A stretch of DNA of 63,283 bases, the filler included, from Hyphochytrium catenoides (Eukaryota > Protista > Hyphochytriomycota), in NCBI GenBank assembly GCA_900088475.1. It is 5 parts of 5 records of this genome, joined end to end, with 100 filler letters (N's around TTAATTAATTAA, not from the genome) between each part and the next. Parts side by side here need not be neighbours in the genome. Positions count along the whole stretch, not along the records: positions 21,136 to 52,056 come from FLMG01000144.1; 4 more parts are not named here. One strand, 5' to 3'. Every line of letters starts with the position of its first letter. The first letter of the stretch is position 1. The notes under the pieces were generated by a model. That model was not told the DNA's origin. It saw only the letters and a list, made by a program, of their open reading frames with translations, and did no database searches. Shown piece by piece: positions 22,224-42,200 of the stretch. Position numbers and translations under genes: made by a program.

Positions 22224-25200
22224 TCACCACTTCATGCTATACTCTGTGGGAGGAGGTAAATATGCGACTTGGAGCCTCTCTTCCTTGGAATACCGCTTTC
22301 GAACAACATAAACAGTTGAGAACGGCGACTGAGAGTACATCAACTGCAGCTCCTTCATGCACTCCTGCAGGTCTGCCCACACATAGCGACTAGCCTTCTC
22401 CAGTTCTGGATTCTATAGAACCAGCAGGAGGATGACAAACCGAACGAGTCAGGACCATGTTAAACAAAGAAGAGAAAGGAGAAAGAGAACACGGTGTGAT
22501 TGGGTGCGTTAAAAAGTGGGGAGAGGTCGTCTTAATAACAGGTCTGAGTAATGAGGAAAAGTCACGTTTACAAAGCCTAGCAACGGTAACGCGACTAGAG
22601 ACTAACAGAAACCAAGGACGTAGAGCGACTAGAGGGGCTATCAAGACGGTAAGTAGGTCATTCTCGATAGGTCAAAGCAGACAGTCTAAGAAAGAAGCCC
22701 ATCGTCATTGTTTTCTTACCCAGCTGATTCTGCTTATGCAATACATTGAAAGAGAAACAACGCAGGTGGCCACCAGTGACGGCTTAAAGCGCAGGAACCG
22801 GTATTCCTGTAGGACGAGCTCGGAGAGATACTATTGACAAGAAATAGTGGTCAAGGCGAGGACACTGAGGCATCAAAAGTATCATTCGACGTACCAGGGC
22901 TAGCATTTGAGTCTGCTTAGTTAGTGGAGGCATCATTTCTTGGAATATGTGAACAAAATCTAAAACTGTGGACGACCAACAGTGACACCCAGTAACCGAT
23001 GAAAGAAATAGAAATAGATGGTCAGATAACGATTCTAGTACTCTGGCTATCAGTGTAACCAGATACCTGTGGGAGCAGCCAGCGAGAAGCCAAGAGAGTT
23101 AAGCAGAGTCTCCTCCATTGCTAGTACTTCGGGCGGTTTATAGACATTATCCGCGCACATCGCCAAATCGTCTACTCCAATGTAGGAGACATCCTCGCAT
23201 TTTGAGGCCACGTGGAGACAGGTAGCTCCCAAGAGTTGGAACTTCTTTTTTGGGACCTGAATAGCATATTAGCGACAAGAAGCCCAAGAAAAAGCTACAG
23301 GATATGACCGACGCGGAACTCTACGGTCAAGTGGCGTCTGACCACAACGGAGGGCAAGCCACGAAGACTGAGAAAGACAACGGGGAAAGGAAGAAGATGT
23401 GAAGGTGCTTTGACAGTGAGGTCGCTATGTGACGTTACCTGTACTTTCTCTAGAAACCTATCTGTATAGCTCACTGCTAAAAAAGCGGTCCGAAGACACA
23501 TCTCGAAAACATCAACCACTGACAACATCCAGAAGCGGTTAGCCAGAGAGAAACAGTCAGAATGAGGTGAGATTTGATGTATTGTGGCTGAGCAAGTATC
23601 AGACGGTTTACCTTCAATAAGCCAATCTACAAGCATTGATCGGTGGATGGGCCGAAGGTTCTTCTGTTTGCTGTGTCAGATTATGCAGGTGTTAGTGCGG
23701 GCCCCAAGTAAAAGCTACCTTTTACAAGTGAGTTATAGAATCCCTTTGTCTACGGGTCTTACTTAAGATAGCTCATCACTGGACAAAGCTTCTGTTCTGA
23801 GTCTCTAAGGTAGGCATGATATAGCTCAATCTGCTCTGAAATGCCTGAATGAGCTGGGGGTAGACGAGGGTAGCATGAGCAAATTTGTCTCGGCAACGGG
23901 GATGCAGGATTTGCTAAGGACAGCGTAACGCAATCATGCGGATGCACCTACTGCAAGGTAGATAACCCCATATTGATTTTTGCATTCTCTACCTTGTAGT
24001 TTTAGAAAGGGCTTCGAAAGGTCGATGGGGATACAAGGAAAAAGTGGTCGATACAGCGCTGTTTCAGAAGTAAAGAACGGATGTCGCAGTGCTTCTTCGG
24101 CGGTGATCCGCCTGTCTGGATCATAGTTCAGCATCCGTTGCAATAGGTCGATACCGAGCTCACTTAAAGTAGGAAATAAGCGCTTGAGAGGTCGGGGACC
24201 CCAGTTTGGAAACTTGAAATTGCAATTTGGCAGGTTTTTAAAGCCTGGCCAGGTCTGCTCCGTTGGCGTGGAAAGTTTGCTAAATATCTGAAAGAGCTGT
24301 AGAGCGGAGAAAAAACCAGAAGCATTAGAAGCAAGGCCTAGACTTCTTTCATCACCCGTGGTATCTCCCTTTATCAGAGCTTTCCGACCCCCTTGCCGTT
24401 TTTCAGCGTTGTGCCCTTTTCCGTCAGCTTACCTGGTCCACCTCTGATATTCCAGTGAAAAGTGGCCTGCCTTGTGCCATCTCAGCAAAAATGCATCCCA
24501 CGGACCAGATATCTACCGCTGGAGAGTAACCCCTGACTCCCATAAGAATCTCAGGTGGTCGATACCAAAGTGTGACAACCTCTGTGGTGTAGACTCGCCG
24601 CGGATAGCCTGTCGCTCTAACTAATGCAAAGTCTGATACTAAGAGCTTCGCGTCGTCTGCAAGAGGAAAGAATGCCCGTCAGAAGCAATACCTGATACGA
24701 AGGCAAGACGACGATAGGTGTATGACAAAAAGCGGAAACAGGAACGGTCAAAACACGGAAGAATCACGGTGCTAAAAGCAAGCTGAACAAAGGTGGACGG
24801 ACGGGAAGAGTGACGTTACTGCCAGACCTAGAGAGCCATCATGCCCCTTTTTGATAAGTAGGTGCTTAGGTTTCAGGTTTCGGTGCAGTATTCCCCGTCG
24901 ATGGCAGTAAGCTATCGCATCTAATAGCTGATGAAGGAGCTTTCTCGCCTATATACAAATCATTGCTTAGCGCCTGGCCCGATCAATAGTGGGCAGCTAA
25001 ATATAACGGATTCTTACCTGTCTCTCTGGTAACACGGTGCCACCATTGGGGTCATTTCCGGGGTTGACGATATCATGCAAGGTGTGGTCTATGAATGGAA
25101 AAAACACGTGAAGCTTGTTGCTTGACAAGTTCACCATTTCTAACGACGCGATGTGTCGATGGTTCATTCCTTCCAACACCGCCAACTCTCGAAGCATGTA

Positions 25201-26566
25201 GTAAGGCACGCCTTCACCTGTTGGATACACTCGTGCCCGCTTCATAGCTAGAATACGCCCTGTCGATCGTTCTCTGACCCTGAAGCAGACGCCCTCTGTG
25301 CCAGTATTTTTGATACCAAAATTTTGAAAGTTTCTCCAGTTAACGCCTCCATCTGGATCCATCCAAGATACTCGATTCCAGAGCGACGGGATGTTGTGTA
25401 GCTCTCTCCACTTCTTGGAAACGAGCATCCTGTTCACCTGGTCATCTACATCCACCAAGTACTCAAGGATGTGTAGGAGGAGAACGGTCGGAAGATCCTC
25501 AATGTGGAAGCCGATTGGCTGCTTATCCAGGGCATCATCTTCTTCATGGTCACTCTTCGTGCTTGAGGCAGTGGGCGATGTGATTTTTATCTCGCGCCTG
25601 AATGCCTTGACATTCCGGTAGCCTTCTCTTTCCCGGACGTCAATTGAGAGCATATCCTCTCCATGGGGAAATGTCTGCTGGGTTAAAGCCGCTCCATCGT
25701 CCGAGCCGGAAGCGGCTTCTAAGATACGCTTTCGCTTCCCTAAAATATGTGCAGGAAGCTCATCATCTGTGAAAGGAGTATTAGAGGTTTAGGTTTAAGT
25801 GCAATCTGGATGAGTCCACTCACAGGGTGTTGAGATTGCATCTGGATATGGCTCCTCCTTAGCACACGAATCTGTCACTTGCGTGCTTTCGAGGTCAGAC
25901 GCTTTCTCCTCTCTCTGTGGATAGTCTGCCATTGCCTCCACGTCTTCAGCCCACTCGGATGTGGAGTCTGCAGCCAGAAGGCTGAGAAATCAGTCCAGCA
26001 ACCACCCAGAGACACGATGTGAGGTCAACAGCGTTCTAGAATCTGACAGGTGATAAAGGTCGACCAGACCACAGAAAACTTAGAGCCTGAAGGACTCCCT
26101 GTTCCCTGCTATAAAGCTATAAAGTTGCCGCCATCTGCTTTCGTCGGCCTCTTCTGCACGCAATAGGCTTCAGCAGGAGCTTCGTATGGAATCAGATTAC
26201 TTTGTCTGAAGAAGATGCTGTCGAGAAGATGCTGTCGGCCGCGCGCTCGGCTGGTTTGCTCTGAAGGTGTTTCAACCAAAGCAGCCAGCCTTCTTCACTT
26301 CGCTACAAATGTTCTTCTCCCTTACTAATCCCTTTTGATAACGAAGCCGTGTCTCATCCACTCTGTCTTGCGCTGTGGTTCCGTTTAGGCTCTAAAGTTT
26401 AAGGCTTATGACACTGCTATCTATCTCAATCCACTCTGTCCCTCACCTACGTTAAAATTTGATCATAAATGACAAGAGAAGGAGAAATCGCCAGTTTCTG
26501 CTCTCCCTGGCTTCTAAAATTGTCCTCACACAGTGTGAAGCCAAACACACAACTCACAGGCTTCAT
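22224..26566 (-). CDS. F-box + CDK-like (probable pseudokinase) + A/B-type cyclin fusion protein (multi-exon; start approximate)
   Basis: F-box: [42 protein letters not shown] (about 25380-25503). CDK domain: [74 protein letters not shown]|[24 protein letters not shown] phase-1 intron 23992-23854 links in frame to the cyclin: [62 protein letters not shown]…[25 protein letters not shown]…MKW*. Confidence 0.9.
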
Positions 26567-27070: not shown

Positions 27071-28779
27071 ATGATAGTAGGCGGCGATGACGACAATGGA
27101 TTTCGGCCATCAGCCCAAGTTTATAAGGATGACGAGGAGAATGAGAAAGGTGACCAGCCGCTCGCCAACGAAGAGACGCTTTATAATGAGGGGGTACAAA
27201 AATGCTATACCCTGAAAGAGCTATGTATCAGGTCCATGGTGAGAGGATGGCGCTCGAGCTTCGAGTCAATGCTTCACTGGTAGGTGCCACGACAGCCGTA
27301 ATTTGACTCCTTGTAGGAGTAATAGACTCTTTTCAGGGTGCCGGACGAGCTGGTCAACGAGATACTGGAGGATATGTCACAGAGCCATCAGGTAGTGCTT
27401 ACAAGTCCCGTGATCATGGGAAAGCATTATCTGACAGCACGCATTCTGGTTCCACGTTCCACAGGTTACAGAGCCGGTGGTTTGTGCGATGACAAGGTCC
27501 TCCCGCCAAGCTCTAAAGCTTTCTAAGTGCTATATGGTGCGCAAATCTATCATCAGGCAAATTCCCTATCATAGTCCAAAGTTGGTAAGCTCCTAGAGCA
27601 CAACCACGCACTTCCTCTTATTGCTAAGGTCTCTCCGACAGCTATCCTTAGATCTTACCGGCTGCCAACAAGTCAATAATACTGTCGTAAGAAGCATCCT
27701 TCAAGGATGCGGGTCGCTAAGGAATCTATCCCTCGCTGGTTGCTCCCGTATCACCGACTCGGCGTTCGATCCTGAGCAGTCGCCCTTCTATCCACTGGCA
27801 GCATTGCTGTCATTGCAGGTGGCATTGGTTCTGCTTGTGTAGATCGCCCTCTTGCTCAATCCTTTTGCTGCAGTTCCTTGACCTTAGTGGTTGCACCCAA
27901 ATCAATGGAGAGATGATGCACATTATGGTTAAAAACTGCAGATCTCTGGAATACGTGAATCTATCAAAGTGCAAGGTACAATCACAAGCCCTTATTAATA
28001 GTGTTTCCGCTTTGCTTAGTTTTGGCCATTTATGTTCCTACAGAAGCTCCGAGGTGACTGCCTGCGGGTGTTCCTACAGTCTATGCGGAGTCTCAAGAGA
28101 TTAGACCTAGCTGCAACGGTGAGTCCAGCTTAAAACGTTCTGCAGTTCTGAGGTACTGACGCATGTGCAGCGTGATGTCATGGCCAGTGCCATTCTCGAG
28201 TGCTCGGAAGGGAGCAGTTTCCAAAGCCCATTTAATAACCGGCTTGAGGAGCTAGATCTTAGTCACTGTACTCTATCGGACGCCAGCGTTTCGCAGCTCT
28301 CGGTGGTTTTGCCACGTCTGACAACCCTGAACTTACGATGGAACGTAAAGATCACCGACTCGGGCTTAGCAGGTCTTGCCCAGAACTGCCATGACTTACG
28401 AGTTCTCGATATTCGTGGGTGCAATGAAATAACGGACGTAGGTGTGACAGCTCTCTGCAGTGCTTGTCCGTTCTTGACAGAGTAAGTGGCCTCTCGAGAC
28501 GACTTCAAGATAGGTAGACTGATGCATTGTGTGAACTGCAGGCTCAACCTATCATTCTGTATGAAGCTCACAAACACAGTAGTTGATCATCTCAGCAGAA
28601 GTTGTCGTCAACTAGAAGTGATCTCTTTCTCCTGGTGCCACGATATTAACCCACGGCGTATAGTCAGATTTGCCAGAGAAGTTCCGACACTGCGGATGAT
28701 CATAGTCCATAATGAGCACTCGTGGCCCAAAGAGCTCCGCCAGGAGTTAGTTGACTTAGGGATAGTAATTGGCCTCTAG
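27071..28779 (+). CDS. Cys-containing leucine-rich-repeat protein (FBXL/AMN1/Rad7-like) with possible BC-box
   Basis: Many LxxLxLxxCxxITD repeats (LRNLSLAGCSRITDS, LEELDLSHCTLSDAS, LRVLDIRGCNEITDVG). The N-terminal TLKELCIRSM fits the [STP]LxxxCxxxΦ BC-box pattern. Confidence 0.85.
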
Positions 28780-33148: not shown

Positions 33149-36100
33149 ATGCAGGTCTTGGTACAGTTTCGGCGGACGCATTGCTTAGATTTTGATGGCG
33201 ATAGGGTCGATGTGGGCGATGTCCTTAGCCGCCTACAGGTATGCGCGAGATTGTTATTCTATTGTACGGCTTACTTTAACAGGGTTGTCTAGGATCTCGA
33301 GGGTATTCCAGCAGATCAATGCCTTCTCTACGCCAATGGACAGCGACTGCTACCAGGTGTACCCGTTCCCACTGCTCCGTCAATTGTCAGAGCCTCTCTT
33401 CGAGGTCTGCTTGGAGGGAAAGGAGGGTAGGGCTAGAAAAGCGTCAAGAAAGATGAACGAAGTCTGTTCTGATACATTCTTTTTAGCTTTGGTGCCATGC
33501 TGAGGAGCATGGGAAAGGCAGCAGGCAAGAAGACGACGAACTTTGGTGCTTGCCGAGACCTCAATGGCAGAAGGTGGGTGAGGGAGCATTTTCCCCTCAG
33601 GCCAAGCAGCCTACTGATCCTCAATATGGGCCCGATTGTAGGCTGCGGCATGTGAACGATGAGATTCGACTGCAGAAGTGGCTGGAGCAGAAGGAGGAGC
33701 GCGAACGGGCAAAGCGCGATGGACTTGACCTAGCAGATCTGTAGGTTCCCCTTGTGTCTGGATGCAATCTTAGTCTTGGCCTGAACCTTTGCCATTATGT
33801 AGCGCGGAAGAGCCAACTCCAAGTGGCATCGAGGGCTGGTATTTGAGCTTACCCTCCTGGTAATATAGCCGCTCGTAGTGAACGGAGAAGCCCACGGTAC
33901 TAATAGGACAAATATTTAGGGCTGAGGGATTCAAAGGTGGACAGAAGAAGAGTTATATGAAGTCGAGAAAGAAGACCTCACTGTGCAAGAACTGGGTGGA
34001 GGCGCGGGCTCACCGACAGCGTAAGTGAACCGAGGGCTTGCTTTGCAATACTGCAGTAAGTTCTACATAAGAAAGTCTGATCCCCTTACACAGCTCCCCC
34101 AAAGGCTCCCAAGTGGTGGGGTTGTCCGCGTGGTCGAGACTGTGACTTCGCACATGGCGAAGACGAGTTAAGGGGTAAGGGATTGATGGAGCTTAAGGCC
34201 AAACGAAAGGACGAACAGGCAGCGAAGAGAGAGAAAAGGTAAAGAAACTTCTACGTATCCCTCTTCCTGCCACGTTCTTATTATTAGTCGCCGCACCGCC
34301 TGTGATTCTTGTCTCCCTTCTCTCTCTTGCTGATCATCAGCCTAAGCCCCATCTTTTGCCCTCTGCAGCCTCAATGAATACACTGATTATCAGTCGTCCA
34401 TCTCCAACAGCTTAGATGACGCTATAGCGGAAGGCCTAAAGTAGGTATTGTAAATTGGTGGAGAGCAGCCAAGTAGCGCGGAGGTCGTTGAACAGAAAAC
34501 GAGGAGAGTGGAGGAGGTGTGGACCAGTGCTAGAAAGTTGATGCAACAAAGGCCTATAGGGCTAAATATGAGAGCATAAGTTGCGCGGTTGACAGCAAGA
34601 TTGACAGTAGCAAACGTGGAGACGTAGGGGCAGGGGTCATTGATCATGGTCAATAAGACTAAAATATTCCAACAGGAGAGAGCGTGAGCGTAAGCGTCGG
34701 CGATTGGAAGATAAAGAGCTGGAACAGGTAAAACGACTGTGTGCTCCATCTTTCTCCTTTACCCATTATCATCATTGCGTAGCTGGTTCAAGGACGGGTC
34801 TTCCTCACTGTCGACAATTCTCCCTACGCTTTCTCATGTTTATCATTGATGAACCACGGTCTCTTTCACGATCATGAACTTTATTGATTTACAGATGACT
34901 TGTTTGGAAGTGTATTAAGCNNNNNNNNNNNNNNNNNNNNNNNNNNNNNNNNNNNNNNNNNNNNNNTCTCTCCTACCTGCTTTGTTCTCAATGTGGTTTG
35001 CAGTCGTCAGTCCTTCCTGTCGACATCACTCTTAAATCTAAGGGAATCAGGCGGACCACCCCATACCTTCGACCGGTGGTTGGAGACCTAATGATAGCAG
35101 AGGCAGGTGAAGTGGAGGGCGGTACTGACTTTGGGACTGTCGTCGTTCGGTCTTGCCGCTTGGTAAGCGGAAAGTGGTACTATGAGGTAGAGCTGCTGAC
35201 GGCTGGTGTTATGCAAATCGGCTGGGCGAACACACAGTTCCAGGTACCGTCCATTCCTTCTAAGCAAGCTCTTGATATATGTTCCTTGTGGAACTAACGA
35301 CTCCCAAAATGTCATAACGCTCTCCGTCCAGGGAGATGAGGACTCAGGCGACGGTGTCGGAGACGACTTGAATTCTTGGGCCTTCGACGGCGTCCGCCAA
35401 CAAAAGTGGAACGGAGAGTCTTCTGACTACGGTGAGACTTGGCGGGCGGGAGACATTGTGGGCTGTTTATTAGACTTGGACGCAGGATCTATGCGCTTCT
35501 CCCTCAACGGCAAGGACTTAGGAGTGGCGTTTGATAATATTCAGTTTTCCCTTCCTCCATCTTCGCCTTCAACGAGGCAAGCTTCTGGGAGCGTCATGCC
35601 CTCTTCGGTCGGAGGAGCTGGGGAAGACCTGGGTATGTTTCCAGCTGTTAGTCTAGAGGAAGGCGAAGCAGTCAGAGTGAATCTAGGGGAAAGACCCTTT
35701 ATGTATGGCCCTCCAGCGGGCGAGAGAGCATTTGGTCAAGTGCGAGGAGTTTGGGATGCTCTTCCGCAACACCTTCGGGCCATTTCTGCCACTGGCACTG
35801 CGACAGTCGACGTCGACTACGAACAAGAAGAGGGTGGCATGGCGCTGAGCACAGTAGAGACAGATATGAAAAAGAAGAAGACACCAGGAGCAGATGGAGA
35901 ACAACAGGACGGAACGCCAGTGTCAAAGGAGATAAAGGGTAAAAGTGAGAAAGAGATAACCAAGCAGGATGCAGCAAAACATGCGCCTAAACCTGCAAAA
36001 AGTGAGACGAACGAGGAACATGCCCGGTCAAAACCTTCAATAGATCTAGAATCGGCAACACAATCGACTCTAGAGGCCCTCGGCTTGGAGCTTCTAAAAG

Positions 36101-36306
36101 AGGAACTCATGGCTCGGGGCCTGAAGTGCGGGTGAGGATATTATGGCTTATGTAGTAGAGACAAGACAAACAGAGCGACAAATGGGTATCTAACATTGCT
36201 CTTCACCAGGGGTACGCTACAAGAGCGGGCACAGAGACTCCTGGCTGTCAAAGGGAAGAAGCCCGAACAAATTGATCCCAAACTGCGCGCCAAAGGCAGT
36301 AAATAG
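33149..36306 (+). CDS. SDE2: SDE2 homolog (ubiquitin-fold, GG|KGG cleavage site, C-terminal SAP-like domain) with inserted CCCH zinc finger and SPRY domain
   Basis: MQVLVQF…LRGLLGGKG|GFGAMLRSMG…TTNFGACRDLNGRRLRHVN; KTSLCKNW…CPRGRDCDFAHGEDEL (CCCH); SGKWYYEVELLTAGVMQIGWA…GDGVGDDLNSWAFDG…GDIVGCLLDLD…FPAVSL…NLGERPFMY (SPRY); LEALGLELLKEELMARGLKCG|GTLQERAQRLLAVKG. There is an assembly gap at 34921-34966 within the gene. Confidence 0.9.
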
Positions 36307-36329: not shown

Positions 36330-38366
36330 TTAGTACCTTCCTTCAATTAAGGCATCTGCCACTTGCTCTACGTTGTGTGGAAAGAGAATCGCGTTTAGAA
36401 GTCTATCCGTTGTCAGCGGTTCTGCCTTTCTCCTCTTTCTAGGCTTTGTCTTGCTATCTGTTGTTTCTTCTCCTTCGTCTGCCCTTTGCATTGCTCTCGC
36501 TTGACTGACTGCCCTTCGCAAGCAGCTTAGATTCTCCTTGTGAGGGTAGACTTCCTCTCCTGGGTTAATCCAATCATCGAGCTCCTCTTCATCACCCGTA
36601 CACTCCACTTCGTAGCCCTTGAGGGCCGTGACAATGGTCCTTACAATCGCTTCTTTAACTCTCTCTCTGTCATCACTCTTTGCCTCCCACCAACAATTGA
36701 CAGAGAGAGATGCTGCCCTGCACTGAGCCAAATGCCACCAATGCCGAGGCAAGAACAACACATCACCTTCTTTCAAGTCAATGACGGTGGGAGGGTGGGC
36801 TTGACAGAACAGAGGGAAGAGTGATGAATCAATAGGAAATCTTGGGTCTAACTGGCTGTAGACACTACTCTCCTCATAAGGTACCCGGGTTGGATAGAGA
36901 AAGGGTGTGTCTTCGGGAGCAAAGAGAAGCCATCGCTTCGTTCCTTTCACCTGGAGGATCAGGTTGGAGCCGTAAGTATCGTAGTGCAGAGGAGTGAAGG
37001 CGCCTGCAGAGCCCAGCCACAGAGTCGCGTCGAGGAGAGTTCTGTCTCCTGGAACTCCAAGCTCTCTCCACGGCGTATAAATCTTGAGCTCTTCTTTAAG
37101 ACCTTCAGACGAATCCGAGAGAAGCTCCTTGATAGCAAGCAGAGTTCGCATGAGTGACAATGTCCCCATATCGCCCCCTTAACATCTATAAAGTATGCGC
37201 ACTCCTTATTCTAGGTGGATGAGCCCTAGTCTTCCTATCTCTAGGGCTTCCTCAGTCTATGGAGCTTACCGCAAAGTGCTTGTAGCTGCAATAGCCCCAA
37301 TGTCGAGGACGTTTCCTCTTCTTCCCTGCCGCAAGTGTTCCGAGTGCCTGGTCTCTGTCAGCCCCCTCAGGTAGGGCAACCCCGTTCGGACCTATAGCAC
37401 AAAGCAGTTCAGTGAGGATTCACTCTTCTTCGTCACCAATCGAGAGCAGGAGGCCCAAGGGGAAGAGGAAACCAAGAGCCACAGCGGGCTGAAACGAGAG
37501 CCCAGTTTTGCCCAGCAACCGCAATCTGTTGCTTCTGGCTAGCATCACCCCTTCCCTATTCTGAACCTTGCATCCTGCTCTGTTAAATTCCTTGATTCCG
37601 CTACCAGGACAGGTCCCTCTCTCCTACAAGGCTAGCTCTGGACCGGCAGCGTCCTTATCCGCACACGTGCACCTATTTCTGCGAACCGTCATCCCCTAAC
37701 CTCTTTGTTCCTTAAGTCTTTGGTGGTCGCACCTATATGGGGCTGCTGCTCGCTCAGTTGTGTTGTCACTCCTGCGTTATCGCTTGAGGACAGAACTGGG
37801 CTTGCTTTCCCTTCCCCTTTGTCTTTTGCTTGCGCCTTCTTGTAGCGTTCTCCATCTGCCTCCTCCGCTGTCAATGCTTCAACATGCTGGATCCAAGCTG
37901 CAAACTCTCCGAGACTCACCTCGCGCCAGTAGCACTCATGCTCCCATCCATGACACTCTTTTGCTTTATGTTCCTTCCTCATCCTCTCATTTTCCCGCCC
38001 GATTCCCAAGCCCAAGGCCGCCTGCCCACCTTCCTCATGATCTCCTCCTGGTTTGCTCTCTGTCTGAAGAAAGCGCGCAGAGGTGCGAAGGTGCCCTAGC
38101 TGCTCTTGAAACAGCACCAGGTCCTTCCATTTCAAGACTGGCCAATGCCCAACGCCGCCGGAAAGCATCACAGGTTGAGTGCCATCAGCTAGAGCTGCCA
38201 GCCAGTCAGAGCGCCACGTCTCGCAGGAGGAAGCATCAATTTGGATCACCGATGGCGACAGGCGAGCGCTATCCCCTCTGGATAAGTCCTTCTCCATCAC
38301 CAGCCACCCTTTGTTGGTCCTGCGTACGAGCTCTCCGTTTCTAACTAAGGCTGCTCTCCTTTCCAT
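36330..38366 (-). CDS. JmjC/cupin 2-oxoglutarate oxygenase, HSPBAP1-like
   Basis: PVMLSGGVGHWPVLKW; LWLGSAGAFTPLHYDTYGSNLILQVKGTKRWLLFAPEDTPFLYPTRVPYEESSVYS; LKEGDVLFLPRHWWH (HxD…H triad); ERVKEAIVR. The LYPTRxPYEESSV stretch is characteristic of HSPBAP1. Confidence 0.88.
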
Positions 38367-39200: not shown

Positions 39201-42200
39201 CTAGGGTCTGCCGGTTCCATAATTGCCACTTTGTTGCCTGGAGTGTCTCTGAGGATAAGAGGCTTGCGGAGACGGGAAGAAATTATGTGAAGGCCCAGGG
39301 GGGAACGGCATGGGCATCCCTGGGTGCCCAAAATGGGGAGGGGGAGGGAAATGATAGGGAGGAATGGGGCGGGCATGAGGATGCAGATGGGCGTTCGGAG
39401 GTGGAGGGGGAGGAAAGAACATCGGGTGCGGAGGTCCAGGTGCAACTGCCGATCCAGCACTTTGTATGGGAAGACCAGTTATTGGATCAATAGCCATGCG
39501 CTCCACAGTAGCAGGAGAAGGCCCAGTAAAGAGAGATAGAAGGTTGACTGCAGCCTCAGTCTGGGACGTAGTAGAAGGTGATTTGTTGACAGCGATCGGT
39601 GCCGCGCTTTCCCTCATCTCCTCGGCGTCGGCCTCCACGGTCTGCTGCGGAATCAGGTTCAACTTTGTCGCGGGTGCTGAAACAGATGGTTTCTGAGCTC
39701 GACGAAGGAGCTCCTCTTCCGTGTTAGAAACAGATGGCTTCTGAGCTCGACGAAGGAGCTCCTCTTCCGTGTTAGAAACAGATGGCTTCTGAGCTCTACG
39801 AAGGAGCTCCTCTTCCGTTAGCATCTGCGGTAGACGTGAGGGTTGGGACTGATGGCTTTCTAACTTGGTGCCGAAGAGTGAGGAAGCGAAGTGGTCGAAC
39901 GAAAAGCCTGAGGGTTTAGTGTCCTGATGACTCTCCTCGCGAATTGTCCGTTGATCTTCGGTCACCTCTCTGGTCGAATCGCTACGCTTCGTCTTCTTAG
40001 CTTCTGTTTCCTCTTCTTCGTTCGTAAGGGGATGAGATGGAAGCCCTTCGTCCCCGTTGGCATGTGCATTCTCAAGACGAATGGAGTCTATCGCATCTAA
40101 AAGAGGATTTCTATCAGTCAGATCAAAGCTGCCACCTGACTCCAAAATAGACCGTCGGGGAAGGGGATCAGCGGGGGAGGAGAGAGGAGAATATTGCGGA
40201 AGAGCAGAGAGGAGGCGTGAGGTGCTCGCCGATCTTCCTTTGGGGTTGAATAGGACGATATCTTCTTCTTCGTCCAATATGGCTCTGGCACCGACGGCAA
40301 AGTGTCCAATGTGAGGTTTCACCCCATTGTCTAATACGTCTTCTTCCTTGTGCCTTTCCGGCACCTCCTCTGTCTGGACACTAAGCACCTCCTCAGCTGT
40401 CTTTACGGTATAGATGAACTCCTCATCGTCACTTTCTCTTCCGTCCCTTAAAGCCCTAAGTTGATCCTTCCTGTTTCTGTAGGTCTGCAATCTCTCTTTC
40501 ATGAAGGAACGATATTGCCTGAGCTTCTGAGCTTTGATGAAGGGAACTTGTCTCAATCTTTGAGCAAACTGCTGTTGCAAGCCCAAAGTTTGTATATACT
40601 TCACAGCGACATGGAATTGATCATCCTGCAGGGAAAAAGGGAAGGAACGCCAAGAAGAGACCGCGTCGTCGTTGAGCAGAAGAAAACCTCGAAGACTCGA
40701 ACAGATAGCAATAGTCCCAAGATCATGATCGCAGCACAGCCCATATATCTGCTTACGGAGCCGTACAACTCCCCTCTCTGCCTACGGAGCCGTACAACTC
40801 CTCTCTCTTGCTCTCTACCTAAATAAAGCTGTGCCCCGAACCCTTTGGTCCCACTTTCAGTGAATCCTCGGTCCCTTACCTCAAAAGCCTGCTCAATTAG
40901 TTCTCGGGGGCTAAACTCGGCTTCACAGCTTAATCCAAGCTTGATTGCATACTTGATTGCCTTGTAATGCTCCTTGCATGCGATCAGTGTCCGCACGAAA
41001 CTCCTTAGGAGCTCCACGTGCTTGTGAGGGGCCTCCAGGTTCTTGTGTTGGAACTCATGCATCGATTTTAAGGTGTGGTGCGCAGTTTTGGGTGCTATTC
41101 CCATTTCCCGGATGTAAGTTAGTGCCGTCAAGAAGTCATGGGAGTCTATGACGCTTTGCACAATCACTTCTTTAGGGAAAAGCTCCTTAAGCTTGGAATC
41201 GTTGTTAATGTACTTAAGAGCCGTGTCCCACTCTCGGTTACGAAGCATGTGTTGGATGAGAATGCGTGGAGGAATGTGATCCTCTAAGTGCAGGGCCTAC
41301 GCGGGAGAGTGAGAGGCTTTAGACAACAAGATAACCAGAGAACGTCGAGGGCACAAGCACGGGAGTGAAAGTTGTACACGGCAGTGCGAGAGCCAACTAC
41401 ATCCCTGCATCTGGGCGGCGTGCAGACCGATGTATTAGACTAATAGAAGAGGTGTGAGAGTAGAAGCCGCAATGGACGTAAAAAGCGTTTCTGAAGGATG
41501 GAACCTCGCAAATTCGCCAGCGCCTTACTATTTACCTTCACTTGCTTGTACGCTGCAGACCACTGCTTCTCGTGTACCATGGCCTTCACGACATCTATTG
41601 GTGGGAAGATAGACGCTAGGTTGAACTCGTCAATGTATTTAAGCGCCAGCGTAAACTGCTTGGCCCTAAGAATAGCTTGGACTAGGGTCTGAGGGGTCCA
41701 AGAGGGCTTCCTAGTTGCAGAAGACGTTGAAATGGTGGCGCCAAAACCTTCAATGAACTCCTTCGCATACTTGACGGCGAGATTAAACTGATTGCTCATA
41801 ACTAGGCGGGATATCAAAAGGTTGACAAGCTGCTGGTTGCCTTGCAACTTGAAGTCACGAATCCAGCGCCCTGTAAGGTCAAACATTTTATCCTCTAAAG
41901 CAAGTTTGACAAGGTCTGCTAGCTGATACTTTCCGGCCAGAAAAGTACTGCGACGGAGCAATGTCGCAGCTTCATCATATTGTTTGCCCTGCAATGTAAG
42001 ACGGAGCCTATTCTCCTGCTCATCTGGTGCTAAGGAGTTGATATCGGTCTCAGCTTGTGGCTTTCTACGGATATGAGGAGAGACGTAACGGCTAGGAGAG
42101 CTGTGCCGATCCTTTAAAGGCTTATTTCCCTCTGATGACACTGACTGAGGATTCGAGGCCCGGGTTCTACTAGCTGAGGTGTCTCGAGAGGCTTGAGGGC

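Follow-up and report, generated by a model that had tools for sequence, protein, structure and literature searches.

An intact F-box / pseudo-CDK / cyclin fusion gene of Hyphochytrium catenoides and its candidate role as an SCF substrate receptor

Animal cyclin F is a receptor of the Skp1-cullin-F-box (SCF) ubiquitin ligase that picks its substrates via the cyclin hydrophobic patch without using any kinase activity, and in the human SCF-Skp2 assembly a cyclin-dependent kinase (CDK)-cyclin pair forms part of the platform that presents the substrate p27. Fusions of a kinase to a cyclin were described in the oomycete Phytophthora infestans by Judelson and Ah-Fong in 2010; these proteins, e.g. PITG_21617, carry an Asp to Asn exchange and were confirmed by reverse transcription PCR (RT-PCR), and relatives were noted in ciliates and Theileria (PMC3019232). 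A further CDK-cyclin fusion, SteCoe_2757, is known from Stentor (bioRxiv 10.1101/168187). Here we analysed a stretch of 63,283 nucleotides, filler included, from Hyphochytrium catenoides (assembly GCA_900088475.1), referred to as the window, in which the minus strand of 22224..25932 encodes an F-box, a CDK-like domain and a cyclin in a single frame. Judged by its sequence, this locus is an intact member of a family in which an F-box, a pseudo-CDK and a cyclin are fused and which occurs in stramenopiles and alveolates.

Splicing the minus strand of 27200-21136 by hand at GT-AG sites resulted in 12 exons and one open frame of 765 aa, ending at the TGA at 22226-22224. The putative first coding exon (25932-25824) begins with the ATG at 25932 and is followed by the donor GTGAGT at 25823. 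Because conservation among homologues does not extend to the N-terminal region, this exon is a tentative assignment; the alternative start is Met75 at 25653, and the F-box is retained with either start. The ATG at 25766, the acceptor edge of exon 2, is out of frame. Exon 2 (25766-25018) comprises a low-complexity N-terminal region, the F-box, a W..P..G..NW linker and the kinase N-lobe. Exon 3 (24948-24828) encodes the catalytic-loop region, exon 4 (24656-24433) the DFA motif, the activation loop, PPE and alpha-F, and exon 5 (24296-23993) the end of the kinase C-lobe (ISEVDQLF and FKFPNW, equivalent to the Cks contacts of CDK2) and the first half of the kinase-cyclin linker. The second half of this linker, the cyclin N-box and the cyclin C-box are distributed over exons 6 to 12 (22224..23853), located at 23853-23763, 23670-23612, 23518-23439, 23256-23067, 22965-22895, 22830-22720 and 22412-22224, respectively.

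All 11 introns have GT..AG borders, nine of them contain an in-frame stop on read-through, and the length of six is not a multiple of three. Intron 5 (23992-23854; 139 nt, GTAGAG..CCCCAG) separates kinase and cyclin in phase 1, and read-through of its unspliced form halts after 19 codons at the TGA at 23936-23934. An earlier note on this DNA had claimed one continuous frame by GT-AG splicing, an F-box followed by the kinase within the same exon, and a phase-1 intron and a read-through TGA at just these positions. The frame was confirmed, exon 2 is an uninterrupted open reading frame (ORF), and the intron and the stop codon lie exactly where they had been placed.

Pfam searches were run on single exons, and whole-protein analyses were done on the Saprolegnia diclina orthologue P0162, to which the window protein is 62% identical over 698 columns. 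In exon 2, an F-box-like match (PF12937) was obtained with an E-value of 4.9e-11 and 42.7 bits at a cut-off of 24.3. The F-box proper, of about 44 aa and with the motif KKWRELH...LW, spans 25390..25521 on the minus strand, corresponding to residues 88-132 of the exon-2 translation and to about aa 124-168 of the model. Exons 2 to 5 matched Pkinase positions 9-90, 100-134, 137-201 and 223-263, and later exons matched positions 45-65 and 68-126 of Cyclin_N and 28-64 and 65-119 of Cyclin_C. These pieces are colinear and do not overlap, a pattern unlike that of chance ORFs. A full CDK-like domain thus occupies the position upstream of the cyclin box, between it and the F-box.

In a BLASTP search the kinase domain was 44% identical to CDK3 over 296 aa, and the P0162 kinase found CDK1, CDK3 and CDK2 as its best matches in the PDB, at about 1e-77. 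For the P0162 cyclin part, the best PDB match was cyclin A2 (6.5e-42), followed by cyclin B1 (1e-31) and then by cyclins D and E; cyclin F was absent from the best 60 matches. The residues R493, D522, L537, K548 and E577 of P0162, which correspond to the five hallmark residues of the cyclin box, are nearly invariant and spaced as in cyclin A (29, 15, 11, 29). The earlier note had called an F-box, a CDK1/2-like domain and an A/B-type cyclin with full N- and C-box, and had expected F-box, Pkinase, Cyclin_N and Cyclin_C as domains; all four were found exon by exon, and the nearest relatives agree with these assignments.

The kinase domain departs from active CDKs at its catalytic positions. The catalytic loop reads HRNLKPKH in place of HRDLKPQN, so that, in CDK2 numbering, the catalytic Asp127 is changed to Asn and the Mg-binding Asn132 to His. 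In the glycine loop in exon 2, NTGTEG compared to GEGTYG of CDK2 and CDK3, the first Gly is missing and Glu takes the place of Tyr15; DFA stands in place of DFG, and PYYMLRE in place of PSTAIRE. Retained are the ATP-binding Lys (AMK, Lys212), the C-helix Glu, the Asp at the DFG position and the T-loop Thr (YTTEV; Thr350, equivalent to Thr160). Conservation was counted in a family alignment of 78 sequences: Asn310 was found in 77 of 77, His315, DFA and GTEG each in 78 of 78, Lys212 in 76 of 78 and the T-loop Thr in 75 of 75, while the PYYMLRE positions were kept in 72 to 78 of the 78 sequences, except Leu (61/78). Either the Asp to Asn or the Mg-binding Asn to His exchange alone normally abolishes phosphotransfer. 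Because HRN, the Mg-site His, DFA and GTEG are fixed among the homologues, the sequence points to a conserved pseudokinase configuration and not to decay, and the dead-kinase reading proposed before holds at this level. Such extreme conservation of a dead active site (77-78 of 78) argues for a specific non-catalytic role.

To characterize the F-box beyond the Pfam match, a profile was built from the N-terminal module of 47 family members. Searched against the PDB, it retrieved above noise only F-box proteins that were solved with Skp1. Skp2 was best (6e-8), followed by Fbw7, FBXL5, FBXL17, beta-TrCP and TIR1, and human cyclin F only reached an E-value of 0.54. The F-box of the window protein alone gave weak PDB matches, with E about 1, to FBXO44, FBXO3 and MAX2. 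In lineages without an above-threshold Pfam F-box, sub-threshold F-box-like matches (6e-5, 1.3e-4, 6.9e-4 and 4.5e-3) were located just before the kinase. Their occurrence at the same place suggests that the F-box is probably ancestral to most of the family. The conserved W..P..G..NW segment couples the F-box to the kinase N-lobe.

An AlphaFold2 model of P0162 (715 residues), computed with the 78-sequence alignment, had a mean pLDDT (per-residue confidence) of 84.9 and a pTM (predicted template modelling score) of 0.84. The 72 N-terminal residues were disordered, and the F-box was predicted as three confident helices at 81-117. All 50 PDB matches listed for this model were CDK2 or CDK3 chains from cyclin- or Speedy-bound complexes, with template modelling (TM) scores by target of about 0.9, and no monomeric CDK2 was among these 50; this Foldseek comparison was made against single PDB chains and gives no information on domain arrangement. 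In the AlphaFold database, full-length structural matches were obtained for Q231B8 (named Cyclin-F; TM 0.75) and G0QSS3 (TM 0.73), both of which are presumably ciliate proteins. Such full-length scores need kinase and cyclin to superpose together, and both proteins align from query residue 55, so that the F-box module is included.

Features of the putative CDK-cyclin interface, of the T-loop and of the docking sites are conserved as well. In the family alignment, this applies at the interface to PYYMLRE and to Lys598, Glu600, Asp601 and Glu627 of the cyclin, and in the T-loop to the Thr and to the Arg residues of LRE, HRN and VRA that partner it. The docking sites comprise the hydrophobic-patch helix RSMLVDW and the regions equivalent to the Cks contacts of CDK2 (SEIDQLF, F.FPNW). 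The roles given to these interface, T-loop, patch and Cks-region residues are those of their counterparts in CDK2-cyclin A.

Homologues with the same architecture are widespread. With exon 2 as sole query, 24 representatives were found below 1e-30, many of them 700-980 aa long, and seven of the ten representatives scanned had the F-box-like, Pkinase, Cyclin_N and Cyclin_C domains together. With the Aphanomyces orthologue as query, the four domains were listed for Aphanomyces, Saprolegnia, Achlya, Lagenidium, Pythium, Phytophthora, Bremia, Peronospora and Albugo; a partial Thraustotheca entry had all listed domains but Cyclin_C. The kinase-cyclin fusion also occurred in ochrophytes, a labyrinthulid, a dinoflagellate and complete transcripts of the MMETSP collection, some without an above-threshold F-box match. 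The protein of the window gene itself was absent from the protein collections searched. It has the F-box directly upstream of the kinase, the signature motif and DFA (columns kept in 77-78 of 78), and in-frame Cyclin_N and Cyclin_C. In a maximum-likelihood tree of 44 rows, it was sister to crown oomycetes plus two contigs, with an SH-aLRT branch support of 93 and of 99 for the enclosing clade.

Two further observations concern individual homologues. P0163 (Achlya hypogyna) and P0170 (Bremia lactucae) contain extra residues between DWLIE and VVDVF, at the position of intron 7 in the window (23611-23519), which is 93 nt long and has no in-frame stop. The extra residues may represent retained introns, which would imply a shared intron position. 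The 688-aa protein P0234 shows the full F-box-Pkinase-Cyclin architecture under a chytrid label (Batrachochytrium salamandrivorans BASA81); its branch, which is very long (2.21), lies among sequences of labyrinthulid-like and dinoflagellate-like type, and assembly contamination, transfer or a wider distribution of the family could each be the cause.

The earlier note had conceded that the CDK-cyclin fusion may not be new but had treated the whole architecture as possibly so; this was overstated, since the kinase-cyclin fusion was published in 2010 and the full F-box-Pkinase-Cyclin order is annotated for nearly every oomycete genus. The name "cyclin-dependent kinase with F-box domain" is in use in GenBank and is borne by P0163 of A. 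hypogyna and P0177 of Thraustotheca clavata; P0162 of S. diclina is entered as "CMGC/CDK/CDC2 protein kinase", and many UniRef orthologues carry the automatic name "Cyclin-F". The term F-box occurs neither in PMC3019232 nor in 10.1101/168187, PMC2705460 is also silent on it, and our literature searches retrieved no paper analysing the F-box of these fusions or testing the SCF idea. The published omission may be explained by the gene model: P0192 of P. infestans T30-4 (592 aa) starts in the third F-box helix and has no Pfam F-box match, while related Phytophthora paralogues do have one, and its N-terminus looks truncated in the 2010-era model. The fusion architecture is thus already public.

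We propose an intramolecular pairing in which the pseudokinase binds the cyclin of the same chain and would be held in the active-like, cyclin-bound shape, as suggested by the retention of the T-loop Thr with its Arg partners, of PYYMLRE and of the cyclin Lys and Glu. The F-box would bind Skp1, making the protein a substrate receptor of an SCF ubiquitin ligase, and the dead CDK-cyclin would offer the cyclin hydrophobic patch, the substrate cleft and the Cks site as docking surfaces, so that proteins docking on a CDK-cyclin would be ubiquitylated instead of phosphorylated. Conserved surfaces combined with a Skp2-like F-box are read most economically as a substrate receptor that uses a locked, dead CDK-cyclin unit to bind its substrates, and we give this reading somewhat better than an even chance. 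More tentative, and to be held as a possibility that may well fail, is the extension to the family as a whole, namely a widespread stramenopile and alveolate SCF receptor in which a T-loop-phosphorylated dead CDK-cyclin acts as a substrate trap for docking proteins. Candidates for trapping would be RxL proteins, CDK inhibitors, Cks-bound phosphoproteins and S/T-P substrates held in the dead cleft.

A rival explanation concerns the gene model itself: a neighbouring F-box-kinase gene and a separate cyclin gene could have been wrongly joined by hand splicing. The public sequencing-run search for the organism, which gave DNA runs only and no RNA run, leaves room for such an error, and since retention of intron 5 stops the frame after 19 codons, an F-box-pseudokinase-only isoform is possible. 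However, the linker flanking intron 5 aligns gap-free with oomycete orthologues, and the conserved linker motif just 3' of the intron lies upstream of every in-frame Met of the cyclin half. The DNA runs of the organism itself supplied contigs that were colinear with the region, and within the gene 36 sites differ between these contigs and the window. Eleven of these sites are exonic, all being synonymous third-position changes, and 25 are intronic, corresponding to 4.8 variants per kb in exons and 17.7 per kb in introns (3.7 times; Fisher p 1.8e-4). The synonymous sites lie in exons 2, 3, 4, 5 and 8 and thus represent both the kinase and the cyclin half, and intron 5 itself has three variants in 139 nt, an intron-like density. 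These data demonstrate strong purifying selection on the coding frame. Moreover, the same fusion is seen in dozens of gene models made independently and in individual MMETSP transcripts, and the P. infestans kinase-cyclin fusion had been verified by RT-PCR as a single transcript (PMC3019232). Given the colinear linker, the synonymous-only exonic variants and the recurrence elsewhere, we rejected the two-gene artefact as very unlikely, to a degree that makes it scarcely credible; the single gene of the earlier note is upheld by the sequence comparisons. A paralogue elsewhere in this piece was likewise rejected, as tblastn found only the gene itself.

Other rivals accept the gene and differ in what the protein does. 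The dead CDK-cyclin might be a decoy or sponge, a naturally dominant-negative CDK that sequesters regulators or substrates of CDKs (CDK inhibitors, Cks, CAK, Wee1/Cdc25, RxL proteins), with the F-box serving mainly its own instability via SCF auto-ubiquitylation, or its localisation, and not the delivery of targets. It would draw on the same conserved docking surfaces and dead active site, and many F-box proteins are auto-ubiquitylated. Judelson and Ah-Fong also proposed that the added domain may regulate protein stability (PMC3019232). But the rigid, conserved coupling of F-box and N-lobe (W..P..G..NW; pTM 0.84) is needed by a substrate-presenting receptor and not by a simple degron, and we regard the decoy as rather unlikely. 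Less probable again is a protein that is primarily a cyclin, activating separate CDKs or forming a domain-swapped dimer, with the pseudokinase as scaffold and the F-box acting outside SCF or vestigial. Although the CDK-contact Lys and Glu of the cyclin box are invariant, as this role would need, the pseudokinase's own PSTAIRE-equivalent PYYMLRE is nearly invariant too, suggesting a private, co-adapted cyclin partner; in addition, the linker is short and conserved, and the F-box is under selection in most lineages. Finally, the four retained residues named above (ATP-binding Lys, C-helix Glu, DFG Asp, T-loop Thr) would suit a kinase active by unusual chemistry, that is a self-activating CDK-cyclin whose F-box links phosphorylation to ubiquitylation. 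The invariant Asp to Asn and Mg-binding Asn to His exchanges, the lost first Gly of the glycine loop and the Tyr15 to Glu change speak against it and render it highly improbable.

Several points also weigh against the SCF receptor that we favour, in addition to the DNA-only sequencing runs. In some lineages, e.g. Hondaea P0204, P0224 and P0040, the F-box is sub-threshold or undetected, and three family proteins lack any F-box-like match in Pfam, meaning that the SCF link may not cover the whole family. F-box proteins can themselves be SCF substrates or act outside SCF. The intramolecular CDK-cyclin interface is a predicted one, drawn only from the pTM, from the kind of PDB chains matched and from the conservation of residues. 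Retention of Lys212 and of the Asp in DFA may leave the protein able to bind nucleotide, and some atypical activity is conceivable.

Stramenopiles and alveolates, which include oomycete pathogens, brown algae and their relatives, and ciliates, are groups in which the control of the cell cycle is poorly mapped, and to our knowledge they often lack clear counterparts of the CDK inhibitors of animals and fungi and of the corresponding ligases. A dead CDK-cyclin tied to an F-box is a concrete candidate for the degradation of CDK-docking proteins in these organisms and, if the proposal is true, would constitute a missing degradation arm of their cell cycle as well as an independently evolved single-chain equivalent of cyclin F and of the Skp2/Cks1/CDK2/cyclin A machine. 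The SCF hypothesis is directly testable in tractable relatives such as Phytophthora and Tetrahymena.

The DNA runs offered further observations on the locus. At 22953-23063 and 23656-23785, paired alternative contigs of approximately half depth each were present in two DNA runs, with 4 and 7 differences, respectively. They fall largely within introns 9 and 6 and look like two alleles, from a heterozygous or a mixed sample. An extra A beside an A4 run in exon 10 (22961) appeared in one low-depth run from 2011 and was absent from deeper runs; a homopolymer sequencing error is its probable cause, not a frameshift allele. In a groundwater metagenome of 2024, a contig of 271 bases spans 23690-23960 (part of intron 5, exon 6 and intron 6) with a single difference, which by sequence identity places the same or a very close organism in groundwater.

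Next to the fusion gene, a divergently oriented neighbour on the plus strand (27071-28104) contains short ORFs with matches to the leucine-rich repeat (LRR) families LRR_6 and LRR_FBXL18 at E 0.0015, below the cut-off. One of these ORFs starts with MPDELVNEILEDM, resembling the start of an F-box, and the neighbour may be an FBXL-type F-box/LRR gene adjoining the F-box-CDK-cyclin gene. Farther along the window, 35206-36135 on the plus strand contains an ORF with SPRY and SDE2 C-terminal matches (2.2e-19 and 5.3e-9). The minus-strand ORF at 36330-37169 belongs to Cupin_8/JmjC (5.1e-31) and is most like HSPB1-associated protein 1 (HSPBAP1); its best matches are about 48% identical and mostly from animals, with brown-alga and Tribonema entries in addition. 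In a long minus-strand ORF at 39201-40604, which matched no Pfam family, a EEELLRRAQKPSVSNT-like unit of about 16 aa occurs three times in tandem, and the C-terminus is rich in proline.

Compared with its database orthologues, the window gene has the same domain order, signature motifs and linker; it differs in its 11 introns and in branching outside the named oomycete genera. With the oomycete and ciliate CDK-cyclin fusion pseudokinases it shares a CDK with the Asp to Asn exchange followed by Cyclin_N and Cyclin_C in one protein, and in the tree it is nested within this family. Active CDK1, CDK2 and CDK3 have in common with it the CDK fold, the T-loop Thr and the cyclin-binding helix, whereas their HRD and Mg-binding Asn, the GxGxxG loop with Thr14/Tyr15 and the DFG motif have no match in the window protein. 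Like animal cyclin F (FBXO1/CCNF), it combines an F-box and a cyclin box in one protein; cyclin F, in contrast, has no kinase domain, and the cyclin and F-box of the window family are nearest to cyclin A2 and to Skp2 (6e-8 vs 0.54 for cyclin F). Orthology to animal cyclin F was rejected on these three grounds, and the UniRef name "Cyclin-F" reflects architecture rather than orthology. The sequence data fit the suggestion of the earlier note that a cyclin-F analogue was built here by a different route. Similar in composition is the human assembly of SCF-Skp2, Cks1, CDK2 and cyclin A (e.g. PDB 7b5l), in which an F-box of the Skp2 type, a kinase fold of the CDK2 type and an A-type cyclin also meet, but as separate proteins, with an active kinase and the LRR domain of Skp2, where the window protein has one chain, a dead kinase and no LRRs. 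By analogy, the fusion would be a hard-wired, kinase-dead counterpart of this human assembly and would be functionally analogous to animal cyclin F.

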